The notes beneath the pieces were generated by a model. The model was given only the letters and a program-made list of their open reading frames with translations. It was not told the DNA's origin and did not search any database. From positions 12,928,451 to 12,992,450 of the forward strand of contig NC_134035.1 of NCBI RefSeq assembly GCF_964204645.1: DNA of 64,000 nt, in the 5' to 3' direction. Shown here piece by piece: positions 5,941-63,781 of the stretch (the stretch's first letter is position 1; each line of letters starts with the position of its first letter). The DNA comes from Tubulanus polymorphus. Its lineage: Eukaryota; Animalia; Nemertea. A program made the position numbers and the translations under genes.

Positions 5941-8137
5941 GGGGAACAACGTGATCTAGAAATCAACGCGTCATAAAATTGAACAAGATCTTTATTTTTT
6001 TGCAAAATTTATACAATAATTTTTTTTTCATAAATTTGATGAATTACATTTGAATGGATAAATGGCACAATGAAACATGTCCCAATTAAAATGCCGCGGG
6101 CTGGGTCGTTTTTAGAAAAATGGTTTGAAGGATTTAAATAAAGTTGATTTTATTTCTAAGAAACCAAAATAATTCAACTCGTGTAATTCATTTGAAATTA
6201 GTGTAAAGCTTTTAAACAGTGAATATATTCTTCCCAGATTCTGGGAGGAAATTTCGACGGGAAATTGTTTTTCGCATCCTGAATTTTTACTTTAATTCAC
6301 ATTGGAGGTGATTTCCTCATTCGATCTTTTCAATGAAAAGTTTAAAGAATCTAATCAAGTTCTAAAATTGTTGGGAAGTGTCACTGATCGTTCTGTGAAA
6401 ACCGAATCCGATACGCGCAAGTGTTATGGTTCGAATAATCGACTGTGGTGGCGCTATCGTACGGTAGGGTCGAGACGGGAACGGGTCGAGAGAGTAACGG
6501 GTCGAGAGGGGAACGTGGATAGCTCATATGCAACTCAGAAATGTTATAATAACACGCGAAATGTAGAATGTTGGCTAGAAATTTGTGTCAATAAAGATTG
6601 AATTTAAATTCAAATCAAGATATTGTCATTGATTCAAATCATATAAGAAATAATGAAAAAGTTTCTTTATCTCCAAAATAAACATAAGTAAAATACATAT
6701 TTCTACTATGATGTTTAAAAAAGCGCCTTATGTCGGCCAAACACAAAAGTGTATCGGGTACGTTTAATATTCGTACGTCGATGGAGGAGACTGATGGAAC
6801 GCCGGCGCGCAGCGGGCACTGACTGGTCTGTTGGGGGGGGGGGGGGAACCCTCACAGGGTTAATAGTTCTAAAATCTAACTTTGAAGCTGGCTAAATTTA
6901 TCAAATTAGGTCTAGATCCCTCCGCAATATGCCAAATTTCATGCCAGGTTTAGAACTAACCGATTCACACACAGTACATTTATTTAAGAATTGCCAACAA
7001 CAAACATATGAATTCAACACTGAATTTCATATTTCTGCAATGTTTTTATGGCATTGTGGCATTGGGACTGTGGTATACACGGTGCGGGCCGGTCATCACA
7101 TGAGTACAGCGTGGTGGCCGACTCAGGCTTCAACGGCGTTGTTTCCTGTCCGAGCCCAGGCAAATTATACTCTGGAAGTAACTAACATGGTCAATTCGAA
7201 TCGAAGATGATTGCTTACCTTTTTCGAATATGTCCTTTCAATTGTGGCTTAAATGGAGGGATTTTATGCCCCAATGTGCTTAAAGATTGCATCTCAGAGC
7301 CTCGGAAAATTTTGTGGCAGTGGCCCAGATCCCCATATCTGGCTATGGTGCCTTTCCAGTTATCACCAACCTGTCCGGGTGGTGAAACATAGATCCGTCC
7401 CCGAAGATAACCTTGGTGGCATTACATTATCTACTCAGGAGCTCTAGCCACCAGCCAGCGCATCTTAGTCATCTTAATGTTCAAGTTTTTTTTGGGGAGC
7501 CCCCCAAACCCCCCTTCATGACAACGCACCTTTTGCGCTTGGCTATTTATCATGCGCACGATTTAATGTCGCACCAACGGATTTTCGGAGGCTACGCCCC
7601 CTGGTGCAACAATGAATTTGGTTCCAAACGGGGAGAGGTTGGACTGGATAAAAATTGCTTTGATGACCAACACCTTTAATACAAGAAATTCTAAAAAATC
7701 AAGCGAAAATTTAAAACAAAAAACGTCTAGTTTTTTATTTTCTTTCAACACACACGTAAAAACACACTTCAAATTAAATGGATCCATCAAAAACCTACAG
7801 CAGTATAATAGAAGTTAACAGATTACTGTAAATAAATAGAGATTTTGAACACAATCGCAGTCACTCTTTTCAGCAGGTATGATCATGCGGCTGCGGAAAG
7901 ACAACCCCTGGCAAGCGAGGATGACAGACGGCGATGAAGCAGATTAAAAATGATTCTTTAGTTAGATTTTTAAGCACCAATTATTTCAAACAATTTCGGT
8001 CATTTTTTTTTATTTAGACAATTTCGAAGCGTCCAAATCTTGGACCAAATGAAATGAAAAATAAATTCAGTTGCCCGTTCATTAAAGAATAAATCATTAT
8101 GTTTTCTTAAGATTATTAGTGAATCATCTTCCATTTT

Positions 8138-54400: not shown

Positions 54401-55033
54401 TTTGCTATGACATGTTTGAAATTGATAAATGCTGCAGGTTTTCAAACAATCGCCGTGGGTTACTGTGGCCACCCCTGATAGAATTGCTGTAGGTCAGATT
54501 TGGCCAAATTCGGTAACAACTCCTGATTTCCCTGATTTACAAGAACTACTGATTTCCCCAATTTGCGACAAACCCTGATTTCCCCAATTTGCGACAAACC
54601 CTGATTTCCCTGATCTGCAAGAACCCCTGATTTCTCTGAATACTTACTGTCCGTCCATTTCCTTAATGGCTTCATCCGCGTCCTCTTTCCGTTTATAGAC
54701 AATGAAAGCGAAACACGGAGGATTCCTAGCGAGCCAAACTTCGATCATCTCTCCGAACTTCTCGAATATCTTCTCGATCTCTCGTTTCGAACAGTCGATA
54801 CCGAGGTCGGCGACGTGTACGCGATATCCGTCGTCGTCGGGAGTCATACTACGACTGTGCGACCGACTATGACTCCGCGAATGACTGCGACTGTGCGAAC
54901 GACTCCGGCTGTGACTGTGGTGATGATGGTGGTCGTGATGACTCCCGCTGCGACTGCGACTCCTCGACGGAGACTTCGTTTTCGATTTCGACCTCGATCG
55001 AGACCGCGACCTTGAATTACTCTTATCCGGCAT
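51454..55033 (-). CDS. SR splicing factor, SRSF7/9G8-like (N-terminal RS/His tract, RRM, CCHC zinc knuckle, RY/RS tail)
   Basis: Exons 54648-55033, 53556-53696, 51837-51968 and 51454-51475 splice in frame (all phase 2). RRM motif VWLARNPPCFAFIVY and zinc knuckle CYQCGEKGHFSRDC. 5' UTR donor GTAAGT at 55370, 3' UTR donor at 51409, AATAAA near 49520. Confidence 0.88.
53981..54269. mobile_element. piggyBac-type MITE (second copy)
   Basis: TTAA-CCCTTTCAGTGC...GCACTGAAAGGG-TTAA. Confidence 0.85.
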
Positions 55034-55229: not shown

Positions 55230-57107
55230 GCCTCACACCACAAGCAAGTTACCATTTAAATACAGTGATTTCCTCGATTAAATAAATCGCTCCGGTGATT
55301 TTTTTATATTTTCTAAATGAACCGAAATCTAATCGTTCGCTAAATGTTCAAATTTTCTCTCAAAACTTACGTTTTTCCGTGAAATTCGGCGTAAAAAAAG
55401 CGAGCTTTCCAACAGTTTTCTATCTCGGGTGGGCAAAAGGTTGAAAGCCTGTTTTGGTCGATGGCTAGTGACGTCATCAAGATCGCCTTTTTGTTACTCC
55501 CACAGCTAAACAACTCACTTTTGACGGTTAACCGCTGAATTTGAATTTGCTGTCAAGTGTATTCTTGCTGGCTGTTGATTAAAAGATTGTGAATCATGTT
55601 TTCCGAACGTGTTAAGCTTGTCTCCGGACCAGTTGGTGGGTATATTGGTTTGAAAAAAGAGGTAGATTGCAAGATTATAAAAAACTCACTGGGTAACACT
55701 GGTGAACGCCGCGAGCATCGTGCACGGTGGTGCAGGCGAGGCGTCGCGACCGCGCGGCGGCAGGGCTTTTTAATTTTGGCTTTTGCCAGTTTTGGAGTCT
55801 TGTTATTGCCACCACGGCCACGTTACCACCACACTCACATTGTCGCTAGGCCTACTGTACTGCCACTACTTTACTTGCTACTTACTCGGCTAAATTAATT
55901 TGTCTTCATCCACGCTTACTTCCCCCCTCCCCCCCCCCCCATGTTAACAAGTAATTTCTGCCAACCGAACCACCAGTCGCAGTAGCCGTAGGCAGTATAC
56001 TATAGTGCAGTAGTGGGTACCCAGTGGCATGCCATTGCCATGCCACTGGGTATAGGCCTATGTTGCCCGTACACAGTCACCACCTACTAGGCCTTAAATA
56101 TTCCAACAACCATTCCAAATCCAGCAACAAAAAATAAACAATAAATTTTAAGGCATCGAAACAGAAGAATGGTAGTTCCCTGTATTCAGAGTCAATGAAA
56201 ATGTATTTCTTGTTGCAGATAGATAGCCTAACCAATTTCAGGATAAGTACTTTTCATTCCTTTATTTATATACGTAGCCTAACTGTTTAATCCTGGCCCT
56301 GGCCACTGAGGGTGTATGCATTAGGTCTGGTCCCAGTTTCACTGAGCTAGTTAGCCAACAATTAAGCTGAGAAATTTTGTTAAGTGGCAATTCAGGGGCA
56401 GATCAGGAGAGTATACAGGGGTGTACACCCCTTAAAACTTTTAAGTTGCACTGAAATTTAAAGGGAAAATTAAAAATATCAACAAGTATTTTTAAAAAGC
56501 TTATATTCCAAAACATGTTCTCTGTAGGCCTACTTCCAAAATATAGGTATTATGTTTTCTGATGATCTGGTGCCCTTTTGATTTTTAATTATATATGATA
56601 CTGATACCTATGCCCTATTTTGGGCTGCACCCCTCCCTGAATCAGTCTGCCAGCAATTAAGAGGATGTTTATAGATAATTTGATTTAGAGGAATCTTTTA
56701 ATTTAGTGCCTGATGTTAGGCCTTCCACAGCCTGGTAGAGGTGGTTTAGGTGAACAAGTTAGTCTTTACACCGCAGGACTTTTAGGTGAAGGTGAAACTG
56801 GCCCTTGTTTATGCATAGGCTACTGTGTGTGCACGCTTATCTTTATGCTTATTCAATTAGAATACCCATGTAGCTACCAAATAAGCACCGCTTCAGAGGA
56901 TTTTAGAAATTTTCACTTCAATAACACTGTGTTCTATTTTTGGGCACTAGCTACTATTATGCACAATTTTTTCAATCAATTCTATCACATTGATATACAT
57001 ATATGTGTCACTTCTTTTGCATATAGTAGGGTCTTACAGTAACCAGTGTGCTCTCTCACACCTCCCTGTGATATTGGCCTGAGACTGACAAATAATCTTT
57101 TTTGTAG

Positions 57108-59439
57108 CGTATTGGTCTCGTAGCAGACAGCATTTTAAAGTATGCTGGGCTAGATGGTGTAGGCTTATTTGAATGGACAAGGATCGTGTGCCCCGGAGGA
57201 ACCATTGAAACATTGATGGAAGGTAATTTCTCGGTTCAGTACTGATTTATATTGTTCATTTTCATTGGGTTACTGATTAGTTGTATATTACAGAATTGAA
57301 AAAGTGAAGATGCTGAATGTGGAACAACTAATCGTCCATGTTGGAACAAATAATATGACGCGTGATGTCCCGCTTGAGATTGTTCTGCGAAGACACGTTG
57401 AATTAATTCGATTGTTGCTCTATAAATGTACTGGGACCATCATTGTACCAGCTCTTTTTCCTCGATGTGATGAGTAAGTATCAAGAATAGATTTTTCTTG
57501 AAATACTATATTTATGATCGATGTTATGATTTTTAAATTTCTTTCTTTTTTAAAGTTTCGATGCTGACACAAAGATATTTCATTACAATGAAATGCTGCA
57601 CCGCGAATGCTTTACACTTGGTGTAAAGTTCGTTGATTTTCACTTCTCAAGAGATCTCCTTTCACCGTAAGTAATCGTTTAATTTTAATAAGCCCAGTAG
57701 GTTATGTGCATTTTTTCGCGATTTAAACTAACTTGTTTTTTTCTAAATTTTGTGATCTAGGACTGACTTGTTACACCCCAGCCGTAAGGGAAATCAGTTC
57801 ATAAATAACAGGATAATGGAACTACTGCTATTGAAAGATGAAGATGAAATGTACGTAGAATTTTTCAATGGTGATACTCAATATACATTCAATCAGCTTG
57901 ATGTTTTAGAAGAAAGATTCCCCGATAAAGTATCAATATCCGAGGAACATTCATATGACATTTCAAAAAAATGCCGAAGGTACATAGGAAATTTAGATTC
58001 AATATCCAGTCGTATCTTATTCAATTACGTTATTACAATCGTTCCTGAAAATTGTCTTTCATACGTAGATGGTAATTGCCATTTAATCAATTTGAAACTA
58101 GGTATATGTACTTGTGAAGCTTTTATAATGATTGGACAACCATATTTTTGCAAACATCTTTTTGCCTGTTTTGCCCAAAAAAACAATATAACCACAACGA
58201 AGGCTTTAATTGATGCATATAAATTCCACATTGTGGAGCCTCTGCCAACTTACAATTTTACTCGACAAAATAGTTCTGTTTCATCTACCCTCATTGATAA
58301 GTTAAAAGATCATTCCCACATTGCTAGCTCGAATGATATCAATGCTGCTCGGAAAGGGCACATTCTAAGTATTTTACATAATGAAAGCCACTGTGGAATT
58401 AAGTTAATAAGCGGACGACCTGCCAAACGACAACCTCACAATATGGCTCATAGGCGTGCTGAGGGTCCAATCAAGGACAATCAGGTTGCCATAAACCTTC
58501 CTGAACTTGAAGTGATAGACCCTTACTGCCCTAAGGTTACAATGCCTAAAGATGCTGAGAATGCAAGACACGGAGGGCGAAAGATAATTAGACCTGCTAA
58601 CAGAGGTGTATCCTTTTCTGCTATGGTTGAAAATGCTGCTATGAAACTAGGTTAAAAAAGCTAAAATATCAGAAATTGAAACCATAGACTCCACTGATCC
58701 AGATCCTGGCAATGATATCGAATTTTCAGCAGATATTTTAAGTCAGAATAAATCATCCTTACCGAAAAAATCAAAAGATACCAAACCAAAAGATATTAAG
58801 TCATAACCAGTTGTTAAAAATGACTCGAAGTCTGTTTTATTTGAAAAAAGTATTGTCTGTTCCTTTTGTATTAAAGACAAAATAAATCCTCCATATCTTT
58901 GTTCATGTCGCAGGGAACTAGATAGGCACATATCCACTTCTCATTCATCTTTGAAACCTATCTCATGTGCTATTTGTTGGGCAGATGGGGTTATTAATTC
59001 ATATGCAAGTGAAACATTCCTTCAAAAGCACATTCGTATTGAACATAATCATCATAAGAAAAAATCTATTGTAATCGATTATAATAATAGAGATGATTAT
59101 CTCAACAGTTCTCCTATTACAGAAATCAATAATTCCAATACTGAAAAAGAATTAGAAATTCTTATAGATCAACCTGGAAATGCAGGCCTCCAAAACCTAG
59201 CAAAATTGAAACTAGATAATCTTTTGCCATCAAAAGTTGAAAAAACCCCTCCTCAGTTAGTTGCTGAAACCTGCCCTGTCTGCCACAAAAACTGCAATGC
59301 TAATCCTAAGAAAAAGTCCACATTCTCAATTGAATGTGATAATTGCCATAGATGGTATCATTGGAAATGTGCTCCAATCAATGAGGCTCCTCCTGAACAT
59401 ATCAGGTGGTTTTGTTTTCATTGTGACCCGATTTCCTAA
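57108..59439 (+). pseudogene. Spliced transposon-borne gene: SGNH/GDSL hydrolase, SWIM finger, two C2H2-like fingers and PHD finger; apparently disabled
   Basis: Exons 57108-57222 (IGLVADSILK...CPGG), 57294-57473 (LIVHVGTNN...ALFPR), 57556-57666 and 57761 onward (TDLLHPSRKG; CTC..CKH SWIM). C2H2-like CSFC..H..H and CAIC..H..H, then PHD C4HC3 at about 59270-59425. Lesions: phase mismatch at the first intron, a frame change near 58650, and an in-frame TAA at 58804-58806. Confidence 0.78.
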
Positions 59440-60179
59440 ATAGTTTGTATTGAATATTATTGATCGGGTTTCGAATGAATCCCTGACGTTAGAAATATTT
59501 TCATTTCCCATGGTGAACGTAGAAGCCGTCACTTAGTCACCTATATATTTACTCGATTACATATAAGGTTAAGAAGCGATGTATATGCACTGGTGTTTAT
59601 AGTGCTCTATTTCAGGTTTTTTCTTTCAGGAAAATATATTTTGTGAATAGATTACCGCTTGATTTTTTATGTTACAGGTTACTGCAAAATCATCAGTTAT
59701 TGTGATGCGTGCCGATGTCTCTGGATGATTCTGACCATGTCTAGAACTTCAACATCCTTGACTTATCATCAATTGGCAGCAGTATACATACATGCATGTT
59801 CAGAGAGTGTATGGACACATCAACCTCGGTTCAAGGCTGTCCTTGTATAATCCATATATAATATATATAGATTGGTCCCATTTTAACTTACTCAACTGCT
59901 TGAATGTCTTGTTTGTTATTCGTAAATTTTCACTTATTCATTGATTGTTTCTGTAGAATTTTATATGTGATATATAAACGTGGAAACCAGGGCCCATTGC
60001 ACTATGAAAGACACTTGACATTTTTTTGGGACAGATCTTTCTATATGTTTATGTCCTCGAGGCATCTGAAGTTAAGAAAATTCCCTTTGAAAACTGGAAA
60101 TGACATAATGAAATAAGTTGTGGAATGTTTAAATTCGACAAAATGAATGTATTTTGCATTCCTAAGGCCCTATATATTT

Positions 60180-61205
60180 ACTGCAGTTAGTCCTGTATGT
60201 CTTTTTTATCGCAATTTACTGTGGTTTATTCCTGTTTGTCCTGTATGTCTTTGTGATCGCAATCGCAATTCATTGGTTGCATTGTTTACTGTTAATCCTG
60301 TATGTCTATCGCAATTAAGTTAGTCCTGTATGTCCTGTATGTCTTAGTTAATCGCAATTCATTGGTTGAATTGTCTGCTGTTAGTCCTGTATGTCCTGTA
60401 TGTCTTAGTTAATCGCAATTCATTGATTGCATTGTCTACTGTTAGTCCTGTATGTCCTGTATGTCTTAGTTAATCGCAATTCATTGGTTGCATTGTTTAC
60501 TGTTAGTCCTGTATATTCTGTATGTCTATCGCAATTAAGTTAGTCCTGTATGTCCTGTGGTTTAGTCCTGTATGTCTTAGTTAATCGCAATTCATTGGTT
60601 GAATTGTCTACTGTTAGTCCTGTATGTCCTGTGGTTTTGTCCTGTATGTCTTTGTGATCGCGATCGCAATTCATTGGTTGCATTGTTTACTGTTAGTCCT
60701 GTATGTCTATCGCAATTAAGTTAGTCCTGTATGTCCTGTATGTCTTAGTTAATCGCAATTCATTGGTTGTTGAATTGTCTACTGTTAGTCCTGTATGTCC
60801 TGTATGTCTTACTTAATCGCAATTCATTGGTTGCATTGTTTACTGTTAGTCCTGTATGTCTATCGCAATTAAGTTAGTCCTGTATGTCCTGTATGTCTTA
60901 GTTAATCGCAATTCATTGGTTGTTGAATTGTCTACTGTTAGTCCTGTATGTCCTGTGGTTTAGTCCTGTATGTCTTAGTTAATCGCAATTCGTTGGTTGA
61001 ATTGTCTACTGTTAATCCTGTATGTCCTGTATGTCTATCGCAATTAAGTTAGTCCTGTTTGTCCTGTATGTCTTAGCTACGAGCAATTATCAAACTTGAT
61101 AATTGCTCGTAGGTCTTAGTTAATCGCAATTCATTGGTTGCATTGTTTACTGTTAAAGCTGTATGTTCTGTATCTCTATCGCAATTTCATTGGTTGAATT
61201 GTTAA
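60180..61205. repeat. Complex satellite inside the MULE (modules GTCCTGTAT and ATCGCAATTCATTGGTTG, period about 60 bp)
   Basis: Reiterated TTAGTCCTGTATGTCCTGTATGTCTTAGTTAATCGCAATTCATTGGTTG units. Confidence 0.93.
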
Positions 61206-61353
61206 CAGTCCTCTGTATGTACATGTAAAAATAATTAAGGTTCTGACAACAGGTTTGTAAAGTAATCAGCTATCTGTTTTGTCTATCGTTGCTTAAATTG
61301 TTAACTGTTGTTTTAGAGTTCTGTATGTCTTTGTCGATCATTTTGTCTGCACT

Positions 61354-61594
61354 CAGGGGCGGATCCAGCATTTTGAAGGGGGGGGGGCAAATGAAAGCAA
61401 CAACAGATGGCTGTAAGCCATTCCAGAGCAAGCACCGATAACGCGAAGACCCTCCCTAAAAATTTTTTGGAAAAATAGATGCAAGCAGGTGCATTCTGAG
61501 CATTACTTAATAGAAAGATTTCATTCGGTTTTTACTCAGTAACGCATAGATTTGCGGCTACATCGGTAAAAATAGAGGGGTGGATCCGCCACTG
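61354..61594. mobile_element. MITE-like insertion within the MULE
   Basis: CAGGGGCGGATCC...GGATCCGCCACTG ends; a similar end occurs near 22857; no TSD found. Confidence 0.55.
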
Positions 61595-63781
61595 AATAGC
61601 TATTGTTTTGTGTAGGATTGTATCTGTGAATTAAGTAAAGTTACTTACTCCAGTCTGATGTTATTGCTTATTGCTCGTATTTTATTGTTTTAAGTGTGCG
61701 AATACTTTTCTTAGATTTATGGAGATCAGGATGACGAGGGTTCGATTTGAACCAACAAATAAACAAAAACATTCAAACCTCAAATTAATCCGTTTACTTG
61801 TCTTTATTTTTGGGGAACATTTTTTTACCTAGTTCAGATTTGATAACACAGTAGTCGCTTGTTCCAAAGCGATGTGCCGTTGAAGACAGACCTGAAGGTC
61901 TTTGCCGATAGCGATGCTATCCAGGATTTCAAAGGATGTGAAGAAGGTGCATCTTCGACAACCATAGTTTGCAGTTTTAACAATTTAAAACAATAATAGT
62001 TTCATTAAACAACTTAAAATTTAAAGATTTAGTGGACTTACTGTTTAACCAGGGCAGGGATTTCTCGCAACCGTACATGATATATACATACACTAGCAGT
62101 AAATACAATGTACTTCTAACCCTTATAAAACTTAAACTATTATTAGTTATTTTACAATTATTGAACGGCAACGTTGAAATGCGATGTGCGCTCAGAGCGG
62201 CCGTAGTGATTTTGGCGTATTGTGGGATTCGAACCGCTCGGAATTTGTACTAGTGACGTCACTCGCCATCGACCAAAACAGGCTTTCAACCTTTTGCCTC
62301 GGGTGGGCGAATACAAGATGGCGCACGCTACGTGGGTCTAACTAATTATTGAATGGAACCGATTCAATTTCAATAGCGGGCGGCTCCAAGATTATCCAAA
62401 TGAGCTTGGGGAAGCTCCGTGTATGTGCAAATCAGGGTATCCAGAAAGCTATATAGACTGGTTGCCTGTCCCATAGACCGGTAACCAGTCTACTAAGCCA
62501 TAAAAAGACCAGCGGTCAAACCGACCTACCATGCAACAACCAAAAACTTGACCGACATGAAATGATATTGAACTGAATGAATTTGGGGATGTAAGGCTGA
62601 TTATGATGTCACGACGGACTCGTCTCAAAGATCATCAGAGACATAACCAAAACCGCCCCCCGCGGCCGCAGGTGACCCGAAACGGCGGGTCTGATAAACT
62701 TTTTCCTTCCAACATTAATATGTTTTGAACCCGTGACACCCTGTACATCCTCTATTCAGCATCATGATCACTCTGAATCAGTATCAGTAATTACTGGGTT
62801 CGAACCGGGGACACCCCTGTACTACATAATCAGTAGTTTGAGTCTCAATTTGTATATCTAATTCAATTTACTATGCGTAAAGTTATCATTTGGATAAGTC
62901 TCTAGATTAAACTTTTTTTCTGCTCGTTTTTTCACTGAATTTGTTCCACAGGCGGGAATGAAAATTTAAAAAATATTTTTTCTTTATTCGACTTTTCTTC
63001 AAATTTCGGGAGGCGGATCCCGTAAACCAAGCTATCAAACAGGCCTTATTCATTGTGTATTTGAATGACAAGACGCGTGCAGATTTCGATAAAAACATCA
63101 GATTTCAGTTCTTTACAATTAATAGGAAGTCACTGATGATTGGGATTTTTCGTTCGTTTCTAAAGTATCGAACACCATAGAATTTATCGTCAGAAGTTCA
63201 TTTTTAGCGAGTAACATTTTTTTCGTCGAGTTTGATGTGACCCAGATGTGAAAAAAGCATATTCTATAAAACGTCACGTCATTACCACAAGCTAAAAACC
63301 AGTAGCGTGACGAAATCAAATCAAATCAAAAGTATCAGGTCGAACTTAGCAAGGCGAACTATTCTAACTGTAGTCATGCGTCATCCAAATATTGCTGGTC
63401 AGTTCTTGAATTAACAATCTGATACGAATTTTTTCGACTGGGAAACCAAATAAAGTCGACTAAATGGTTCACCATATACGAGATAGCTCACGGCCAGAAT
63501 TTTATAGTTTTTGGCATAAAAAGGAAATAGAAACAAACAAGAGAGATGAAAGTTGTTTGCAAGTTGCCGTTGAAAGGTTTGAGCTATTCGTGGTAGCGCC
63601 ATTCCATCAGAGTAACTCTGCTCAAGGACACTTCGTATCAGATACTGATTCAGATTTACAGGTTGCAGCTAGCGAGCGGAGCGCACATTTCCATTCAGAA
63701 AATTACACACTATTATTCTACATCGTGAAAGGGGCGTTACATGACGAGAGAAGGATATTCCACGTCTCTGCCGAGCATTGA

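Follow-up and report, generated by a model that had tools for sequence, protein, structure and literature searches.

An internally deleted, esterase-bearing derivative of a Rehavkus-like Mutator-superfamily transposon in the nemertean Tubulanus polymorphus

What kind of mobile element carries an esterase and several zinc fingers, and no transposase of its own? This question is raised by a 64,000-nucleotide stretch of the Tubulanus polymorphus genome (assembly GCF_964204645.1, contig NC_134035.1, positions 12,928,451 to 12,992,450 of the forward strand; hereafter the window), which contains a 6,865-bp element at window positions 55433-62297. An earlier note, made from the letters of the window, described a transposon of the Mutator superfamily (a Mutator-like element, or MULE) encoding an SGNH esterase fused in frame to a SWIM finger and followed by C2H2-like fingers and a PHD finger, with no visible DDE transposase. 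Here, we conclude with a probability of about 0.9 that the window copy derives, by internal deletion, from a ~12.1-kb autonomous cut-and-paste DNA transposon of the Mutator superfamily with a Rehavkus-like build, and is itself non-autonomous and coding-dead. By itself, the window copy is an ordinary dead derivative; the intact copies of its family carry the esterase, the fingers, and also the transposase missing from it.

Several of the parts first described are real. The two terminal inverted repeats (TIRs) of the window copy are 44 bp long and differ by one mismatch, with the inverted-repeat comparison extending to 45 nt at 98%, and the same 9-bp target-site duplication (TSD) stands on either side of the element. 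A CRE-like palindrome, TGACGTCA, closes the inner side of both TIRs (55469-55476 and 62254-62261). Four SGNH blocks (ADS, PGG, GTNN, and DLLH) do lie on small exons bounded by GT-AG, the PHD finger scores 25.8 bits against a Pfam threshold of 24, and the SWIM-like and C2H2-like patterns can be seen by eye. Pfam searches with single window exons gave weak or no matches, and no significant esterase match. The features of the window copy are as follows, with exon coordinates carried over from the full-length copy L001 by string match.

55424-55432, no strand: left TSD, 9 bp, CTCGGGTGG, read directly and matching the right TSD
55433-55476, + strand: 5' TIR, 44 bp, with the TGACGTCA palindrome at its inner end (55469-55476)
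ends at 56246, + strand: exon 1
56707-56785, + strand: exon 2, 5' leader (joints 916>1377 and 1452>1774 of run X4 contigs on L001)
57108-57222, + strand: exon 3, with SGNH block I (ADS, 57123-57131) and block II (PGG, 57192-57200)
57294-57473, + strand: exon 4, with SGNH block III (GTNN, 57343-57354) and a 1-bp deletion after 57303
57556-57666, + strand: exon 5, SGNH domain
57761-57850, + strand: exon 6, with SGNH block V (DLLH, 57765-57776) and the donor AAAT/GTACGT
57851-57862, + strand: remnant of intron 6, 12 nt, stopping at the junction of a 5.36-kb deletion
57863-59439, + strand: 3' part of exon 13 (transposase), with the stop codon at 59437-59439
58107-58157, + strand: SWIM-like motif, CxCx11CxH, pattern seen by eye
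58858-58941 and 58966-59046, + strand: two C2H2-like motifs, patterns seen by eye
59272-59424, + strand: PHD finger, by Pfam and by PDB matches to the PHD fingers of TAF3 and BPTF
60226-61076, no strand: minisatellite with units of ~61-74 bp and a 153-bp higher-order unit, ~1.2 kb before the 3' TIR
62254-62297, - strand: 3' TIR, 44 bp
62298-62306, no strand: right TSD, 9 bp, CTCGGGTGG, matching the left TSD

Compared by BLAST with ten copies of ~12 kb, the window copy is collinear with them except for one internal deletion of 5.36 kb. The base at window position 57862 aligns with position 2532 of the reference copy (L001+L002, C2:2994177-3006473) and its right-hand neighbour with position 7893; the left edge of the deletion thus falls 12 nt into the intron after the last esterase exon, and the right edge within the large exon 13. 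Lost from the window copy are exons 7-12 together with 4.16 kb at the start of exon 13, and with them the Ulp1-like, GATA, and DDE domains. Because the edges fall in intron 6 and exon 13, the supposed natural fusion of SGNH to SWIM dissolves: the open reading frame (ORF) at 57768-58655 reads through 12 nt of retained intron (57851-57862) and across the deletion junction. Likewise, the lack of a visible DDE domain is true of the window copy but not of the family, in which that domain occupies the deleted part and is intact in the 12-kb copies. Further lesions comprise a 1-bp deletion after 57303 in exon 4 (the second SGNH exon), which shifts the frame, a +T frameshift at 58652, and an ATA>TAA stop at 58804-58806. 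The large deletion, the frameshift, and the TAA are common to four copies (the window copy, L029, L030, and L039), the three sisters of which lie at C3:6.47 Mb, C3:19.92 Mb, and C6:22.71 Mb, each with a TSD of its own. A coding-dead derivative has therefore been copied to at least four sites, which required a transposase supplied in trans. Recognition of the deletion guards against the false record of a "DDE-less MULE" and against a false SGNH-SWIM fusion protein.

A genome search with the TIR collected further copies and found the DDE-bearing partner, of which there are at least seven intact copies. The 33-nt core of the TIR occurs 65 times in the genome (58 exact) and its reversed control not once, indicating that the terminal repeats are not due to chance. 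The family comprises approximately 30 copies, and among those that could be bounded (the window copy and 25 others), the 9-bp TSDs are perfect, and all different, in 20 of 26. Seven ~12-kb copies contain an uninterrupted 1918-codon frame and are 99.8% identical; the SWIM-like, C2H2-like, and PHD part of the window copy is the C-terminal third of this frame. Other derivatives, 2.1-9.7 kb in length, have different breakpoints. No full-length copy lacks the esterase exons, most derivatives have them too, with gaps only where deletions take them out, and older Tubulanus copies keep the esterase at 86-95% identity. With seven intact copies so alike, near-perfect TIRs, spliced transcripts, and trans-mobilised derivatives, the family looks young and currently active, and probably is active.

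The gene of the autonomous copies consists of 13 exons. When placed on L001, the contigs of the public run X4 give 12 consecutive joints, all GT..AG and on the + strand, which link the two exons of the leader, the four of the esterase, and the six small ones of the linker to the large exon 13. Exons 1-2 form the leader, exons 3-6 encode the SGNH/GDSL esterase, and exons 7-12 encode a linker with a C2H2-like motif. In exon 13 (5.7 kb), a Ulp1-like cysteine protease is followed by a Ser/Thr/Pro-rich repeat and a GATA finger, then by a DDE domain with its CCHC insert, and lastly by a SWIM-like motif, a pair of C2H2-like motifs, and the PHD finger. Read in the implied phases, all exons from exon 3 to the final stop are open (6,699 nt in total), and the ten splice junctions from exon 3 to exon 13 hold the esterase frame in register with the transposase. 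The full product of ~2200 aa would accordingly run from an SGNH esterase through a Ulp1-like protease, a GATA finger, a MULE-type DDE domain, and SWIM-like and C2H2-like motifs to the PHD finger. As the exons predict, RefSeq isoform X1 (P0151, 2196 aa) equals isoform X2 (P0002, 1995 aa) with 201 additional N-terminal residues. The RefSeq proteins P0151 and P0153 served as spliced references, and the sole local join of exons was a frame check of exon 2 with exon 3. No intronless copy was found in the assembly, in which esterase matches come exon by exon, and the joints are therefore not explained by a DNA copy. The introns had been taken as a sign of long residence in a DNA element, which is only hinted at here; a locus at C7:9.33 Mb, described below, seems to share one intron position.

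The DDE domain was identified from conserved residues and from structural neighbours. A full HMMER search found 177 relatives of the transposase, of which 24 make up the conservation alignment A1. Among these 24, the residues D1343, D1435, and E1566 (P0151 numbering) and a CxxH motif are conserved, and an invariant Cys-Cys-His-Cys cluster (PCxxxxCxHP...C, P0151 1395-1422) stands between the first two catalytic Asp residues in 24/24; the cluster is probably a zinc-binding insert typical of the transposase group. The AlphaFold (AF2) model of the DDE domain has a predicted local distance difference test score (pLDDT) of 84.7, and its best solved neighbours in Foldseek are the IS256-family ISCth4 transposase (2e-4), then Hermes, and all ten matches listed from the ESM Atlas are PF10551 MULE clusters (TM by query 0.46-0.59). 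One relative, P0166, is named in UniRef as a SWIM-type domain protein. With regard to the other domains, a Ulp1-like profile made from nine relatives matches yeast Ulp1 (1euv) at 1.2e-6 and SENP1, 2, and 5 at 0.002-0.04; an invariant His and Asp and the conserved QxxxxxC / YPxQxCxxxCG follow the order His-Asp-Gln-Cys, and Pfam C48 is not matched by this domain. The GATA finger matches GATA1 and GATA3 in the PDB at ~1e-6, and TAF3 and BPTF are the best solved matches of the PHD finger. A Pfam search with the 1915-aa ORF returned only the PHD finger and a weak GATA match.

Membership in the Mutator superfamily, as first proposed, is upheld at the level of the family by the type of DDE domain, the TIRs, and the TSDs: elements of this superfamily have TIRs and 9-11-bp TSDs, and here the two are 44 bp and 9 bp. 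Within it, the traits listed for Rehavkus elements are TSDs of 9 bp, a single transposase gene that includes a PHD finger, and a minisatellite before the 3' TIR (Dupeyron et al., 2019, Table 1, PMC6446971); they form a sister group or outgroup of MULEs and have been reported only from arthropods and annelids (PMC6446971). The Tubulanus family shows all three traits, and its minisatellite differs in length from copy to copy; within this minisatellite, WGATAR is not enriched (2 in 955 nt vs 16 in 5,910 nt). Placed by these described traits, the family looks like a Rehavkus-like MULE. It differs from Rehavkus in its nemertean host, its 44-bp TIR, its 13 exons, and its N-terminal SGNH esterase. 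Compared to canonical MULEs (MuDR MURA, FAR1/FRS, ZSWIM1-3), the transposase has the same catalytic fold, a CxxH after the second Asp, and a putative SWIM-type motif after the DDE domain, and the element likewise has 9-bp TSDs and an insertion near the 5' end of a gene; in contrast, it stays below the Pfam MULE and SWIM thresholds, has a CCHC insert between the first two Asp residues, and encodes a far larger protein, of ~2200 aa.

Several observations weigh against this picture. Run X4 is not recorded as RNA, and the splicing is inferred from the GT..AG joints together with the RefSeq models. Among the 24 relatives, Pfam matched ZSWIM1-3_RNaseH-like in 10/24 and MULE in 5/24, all below threshold; for the SWIM family the one match, in relative P0004, reached 17.1 bits where the cut-off is 19.6. 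Rehavkus of the beetle Tribolium has long inverted termini carrying tandem repeats (bioRxiv 10.1101/2024.12.02.626372), and such long, repeat-bearing inverted termini are absent from the Tubulanus family with its 44-bp TIR; in the window copy no inverted counterpart of the minisatellite was found, and the tandem array stands on the 3' side only.

Three other accounts of the element can be set against the derivative of a Rehavkus-like MULE. In the first of them, which the earlier note had put forward, the natural gene of a MULE subgroup without its own transposase would be an SGNH-SWIM-C2H2-PHD accessory protein, and the window frame is indeed continuous from SGNH block V into the SWIM-like motif. 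However, that frame runs over 12 nt of intron and the site of the deletion, three more lesions mar the copy, intact DDE-bearing copies lie between the same termini, and the SWIM-C2H2-PHD part forms the C-terminal end of a transposase exon of 1918 codons, which leaves this account extremely improbable. To the same slight degree one might credit a one-off capture, by the window copy alone, of an esterase fragment from a long interspersed nuclear element (LINE) or from the host, in the manner of Pack-MULEs. MULEs do capture gene fragments (PMC6431247), yet everything within the window copy is also found in the 12-kb copies, and every full-length copy has the esterase spliced to the transposase; as the origin of the esterase at the level of the family, on the other hand, capture is likely. 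Superfamily Zisupton/KDZ combines SWIM and Ulp1-like domains. Assignment of the Tubulanus family to that superfamily rather than to MULE/Rehavkus would suit the large multi-domain transposase and the failure to pass the Pfam MULE model, but the Pfam matches of the 24 relatives include no KDZ family, the structural neighbours are IS256 and MULE, and the TSDs measure 9 bp as against 8 bp in Zisupton (PMC12730594); we regard it as very unlikely. The derivative of an autonomous, Rehavkus-like MULE is accordingly retained as our reading of the window copy.

The identity of the esterase was examined with the RefSeq isoform that includes exon 3 and has the whole domain. This protein, P0153, reaches 39.2 bits on PF13472 Lipase_GDSL_2 (cut-off 32.9), which bears out the SGNH fold by profile search, and matches OSK at 5e-5; residues P0151:1-330, which are without blocks I and II, score 32.3 bits on PF13472. 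The catalytic Ser (block I), Gly (II), Asn (III), and Asp-x-x-His (V) all lie in the open frame of exons 3-6, with block I reading ADS, that is, with Ala in place of Gly. In the PDB, the esterase matches Oskar OSK at 0.002 over a part and the esterase of ZfL2-1 ORF1p (4c1b) at 0.013 over its full length; the latter alignment, in which the similarity is weak, pairs GDS, HVGTND, and DxLHPSxxG. As regards the suggestion of a LINE-ORF1-like esterase, 4c1b is the best full-length solved match, although over a part of the domain it is outscored by Oskar OSK. In the ESM Atlas, the nearest clusters are SGNH or Lipase_GDSL_2, and a search of the Tubulanus genome itself found no close LINE or Penelope-like esterase.

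Element-borne esterases have been described in LINE, Penelope-like, and long terminal repeat (LTR) elements (PMC5408684; PMC6431247); in the literature searched, none was found in a cut-and-paste DNA transposon. The Tubulanus domain resembles the ORF1p esterase of L2/CR1/RTEX LINEs (ZfL2-1, 4c1b; Kapitonov and Jurka, 2003, as cited in PMC5408684) in its SGNH fold, GDS-like, HVGTN(D/N), and DxLHPSxxG motifs, and in being cargo of a mobile element. Moreover, a CR1-like ORF1p with both esterase and PHD has been reported, and the Tubulanus protein has both. The Tubulanus domain differs in that its host is a DNA transposon, that it is split by three introns, that it is joined to a DDE transposase and does not stand ahead of a reverse transcriptase, and that no coiled coil was seen in the Tubulanus protein.

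How far the esterase pairing extends was examined in relatives of the transposase. The same Ulp1-like/GATA/DDE/SWIM-like/PHD build occurs in Patella caerulea, Oratosquilla oratoria, Scylla and Portunus crabs, Priapulus caudatus, and further eukaryotic contigs. Pfam found no GDSL match in eight long relatives, tblastn with the esterase drew a blank in the 10 kb ahead of the Patella, Oratosquilla, Scylla, and Priapulus genes, and in a word-indexed search no other long protein shared the N-terminal 330 residues; word-indexed protein searches gave only Priapulus, followed by the element's own cluster. Among the other repeats around the Patella and ENA relatives, no TIRs could be made out. Within Tubulanus, a second family at C6:15723173-15728272 (-) has a seemingly intact 1787-codon open frame, with 36% identity in the Ulp1-like domain, 54% in the DDE domain, and 41% in the C-terminus, and no esterase match was detected in it. 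At C7:9329196-9334270 (-), by contrast, SGNH exons (49-59% identity), apparently with a shared intron position, lie directly upstream of a pair of Ulp1-like domains on that strand (38% identity, in an 884-codon open frame), and no DDE or C-terminal (SWIM-PHD) match was found nearby. This locus may be a derivative of a divergent family, a domesticated gene, or a donor; since it repeats the pairing of SGNH and Ulp1-like domains, it suggests that the pairing has been kept. Two tandem Ulp1-like domains, such as the C7 locus seems to have, are also present in relative P0012 from an ENA contig (130-435 and 640-965). In addition, the ENA contig of relative P0008 contains an intronless gene for SGNH (Lipase_GDSL_2) and NADAR (L044 15-593, -), 9.4 kb upstream of the related transposase and on the opposite strand, whose product is 21% identical to the Tubulanus esterase (E 1e-4).

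Whether the esterase is made whole is a separate matter. Directly before the esterase frame, the observed junction of exons 2 and 3 has an in-frame TAG, and the first in-frame AUG follows blocks I and II. An AUG in exon 2 (window 56713; stretch 56713-56785, L001 1383-1455) opens a 45-codon upstream ORF, out of frame, that overlaps the esterase start (window 57108-57170). However, use of an AG 16 nt past the observed acceptor (ctcgtAG/CAGACAGC) would bring this AUG in frame with block I, and the frame check then predicts the product MLGLPQ...AGLLADSILKY, Ser nucleophile included. P0153, which derives from the C8 copy, has a different start and the full domain; its initial "MWPN" is not contiguous in the C8 copy with 100-bp flanks and is probably a flanking or split exon.

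In view of these findings, the esterase might be a captured fragment that is now a leader or relic, with translation starting after blocks I and II or later, and with Ulp1-GATA-DDE-SWIM-PHD as the effective protein. The TAG before exon 3, the lack of an AUG ahead of block II, and the upstream ORF over the start all favour such a relic: with the first AUG past block I, the main product would be without the Ser nucleophile. Five RefSeq models begin at that AUG (MEELKKV), isoform X2 skips the esterase entirely, relatives in Patella, Oratosquilla, Scylla, Priapulus, and two further eukaryotes are without an esterase, and the N-terminal region was found in no other long protein. Conversely, all four catalytic blocks are retained in an open frame, ten junctions keep the esterase joined to the transposase frame, the alternative AG would supply a start, P0153 encodes the whole domain, and the divergent C7 locus again pairs SGNH exons with Ulp1-like domains. 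On the other reading, the esterase would be a working, retained module of a DDE transposase polyprotein, taken from a retroelement-type SGNH esterase and kept beside the Ulp1-like protease in two divergent Tubulanus lineages. Besides the TAG and the late AUG, this must contend with a poor single-sequence AF2 fold of the esterase (pLDDT 51.3), which was consequently not used for structure search, and with copies that are too alike for a test of selection (e.g., 2 synonymous vs 2 non-synonymous changes in the esterase exons). For this last reason, we grade both readings low: a truncated relic is a serious candidate at somewhat under even odds, and a working module is possible, though rather unlikely.

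Kaonashi/KI-MULEs of plants are MULEs that carry a Ulp1-like protease. The Tubulanus family, too, has a Ulp1/C48-like protease with a Mutator-superfamily element, but here a single polypeptide contains both the protease and the DDE domain, an arrangement conserved across animal phyla. Other DNA transposons with accessory enzymes or proteins include fungal KDZ, hAT, and EnSpm elements with a TET/JBP dioxygenase, oomycete MuDR with SET, and VANDAL with VANC (PMC12730594). They resemble the Tubulanus element in being cut-and-paste elements with an extra enzyme, thought to help them cope with the host; the Tubulanus enzyme differs in being an SGNH esterase with no known chromatin substrate.

Some further features of the window and of individual copies may be added. 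An exon of an SR-protein-like gene, encoding an RRM and then an RS/HS-rich tail (54644-55033, -), adjoins the window element. The ATG of this gene is 400 bp from the 5' TIR, and the element therefore sits in its upstream or leader region. A 543-bp palindromic insertion, resembling a miniature inverted-repeat transposable element (MITE), is nested in the 5' region, near reference ~758, of five copies (L007+L008, L009+L010, L011+L012, L033, and L034) and serves as a subfamily marker. In L024, L028, L035, and L038 (4.77-4.79 kb), family sequence is limited to the terminal ~415 bp on the 5' side and ~1.24 kb on the 3' side, and the interior is 3.1 kb of unrelated, satellite-rich sequence; a 258-aa ORF of this subfamily was considered as a captured gene and rejected, as it is a translated tandem repeat (satellite). 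Copy L026+L027 (C2:19705419-19722669, 17.25 kb) has an intact transposase frame and a 5.5-kb insertion at reference 390, probably a nested element.

Upon the copy structure, TSDs, splicing, domain identities, and trans-mobilised derivatives observed here, a mechanism of transposition modelled on known families may be proposed. The transposase of an intact copy would bind the shared 44-bp TIRs and move derivatives in trans, through DDE cut-and-paste with 9-bp staggered cuts at the target. GATA and C2H2 fingers may bind the DNA of the element or its termini, and the PHD finger might steer insertion to promoter chromatin, a step beside which we cite the position of the window copy upstream of the start codon of the SR-protein-like gene. 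The Ulp1-like protease would process the polyprotein or remove SUMO from host factors. That an esterase exon can be read into the SWIM-PHD tail in the window copy is a fortuitous outcome of the 5.36-kb deletion. As the sole precedent with experimental tests, the esterase domain of ZfL2-1 hydrolyses esters and binds acidic phospholipids, not RNA (Schneider et al., 2013, PMC3905857). As a best guess, the Tubulanus esterase could be a lipid- or membrane-binding module or an OSK-like module binding ribonucleoprotein (RNP), derived from a retroelement-type esterase, and is maybe made only in truncated form.

With the family described here, the range of Rehavkus-like elements comes to include nemerteans, and that of their relatives molluscs, crustaceans, and priapulids. 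The family defines a conserved build of animal transposase, comprising a Ulp1-like protease, a GATA finger, a DDE domain with a CCHC insert, a SWIM-like motif, and a PHD finger, to which splicing joins an esterase of a kind described elsewhere in retroelements. What esterases borne by transposable elements do would be easier to address in a DNA element, which has no need of RNA packaging. If the esterase is a working module, it would serve a step common to RNA- and DNA-based transposition, and not RNA packaging; candidate steps would be a membrane- or lipid-dependent nuclear entry or an OSK-like targeting to germline granules.

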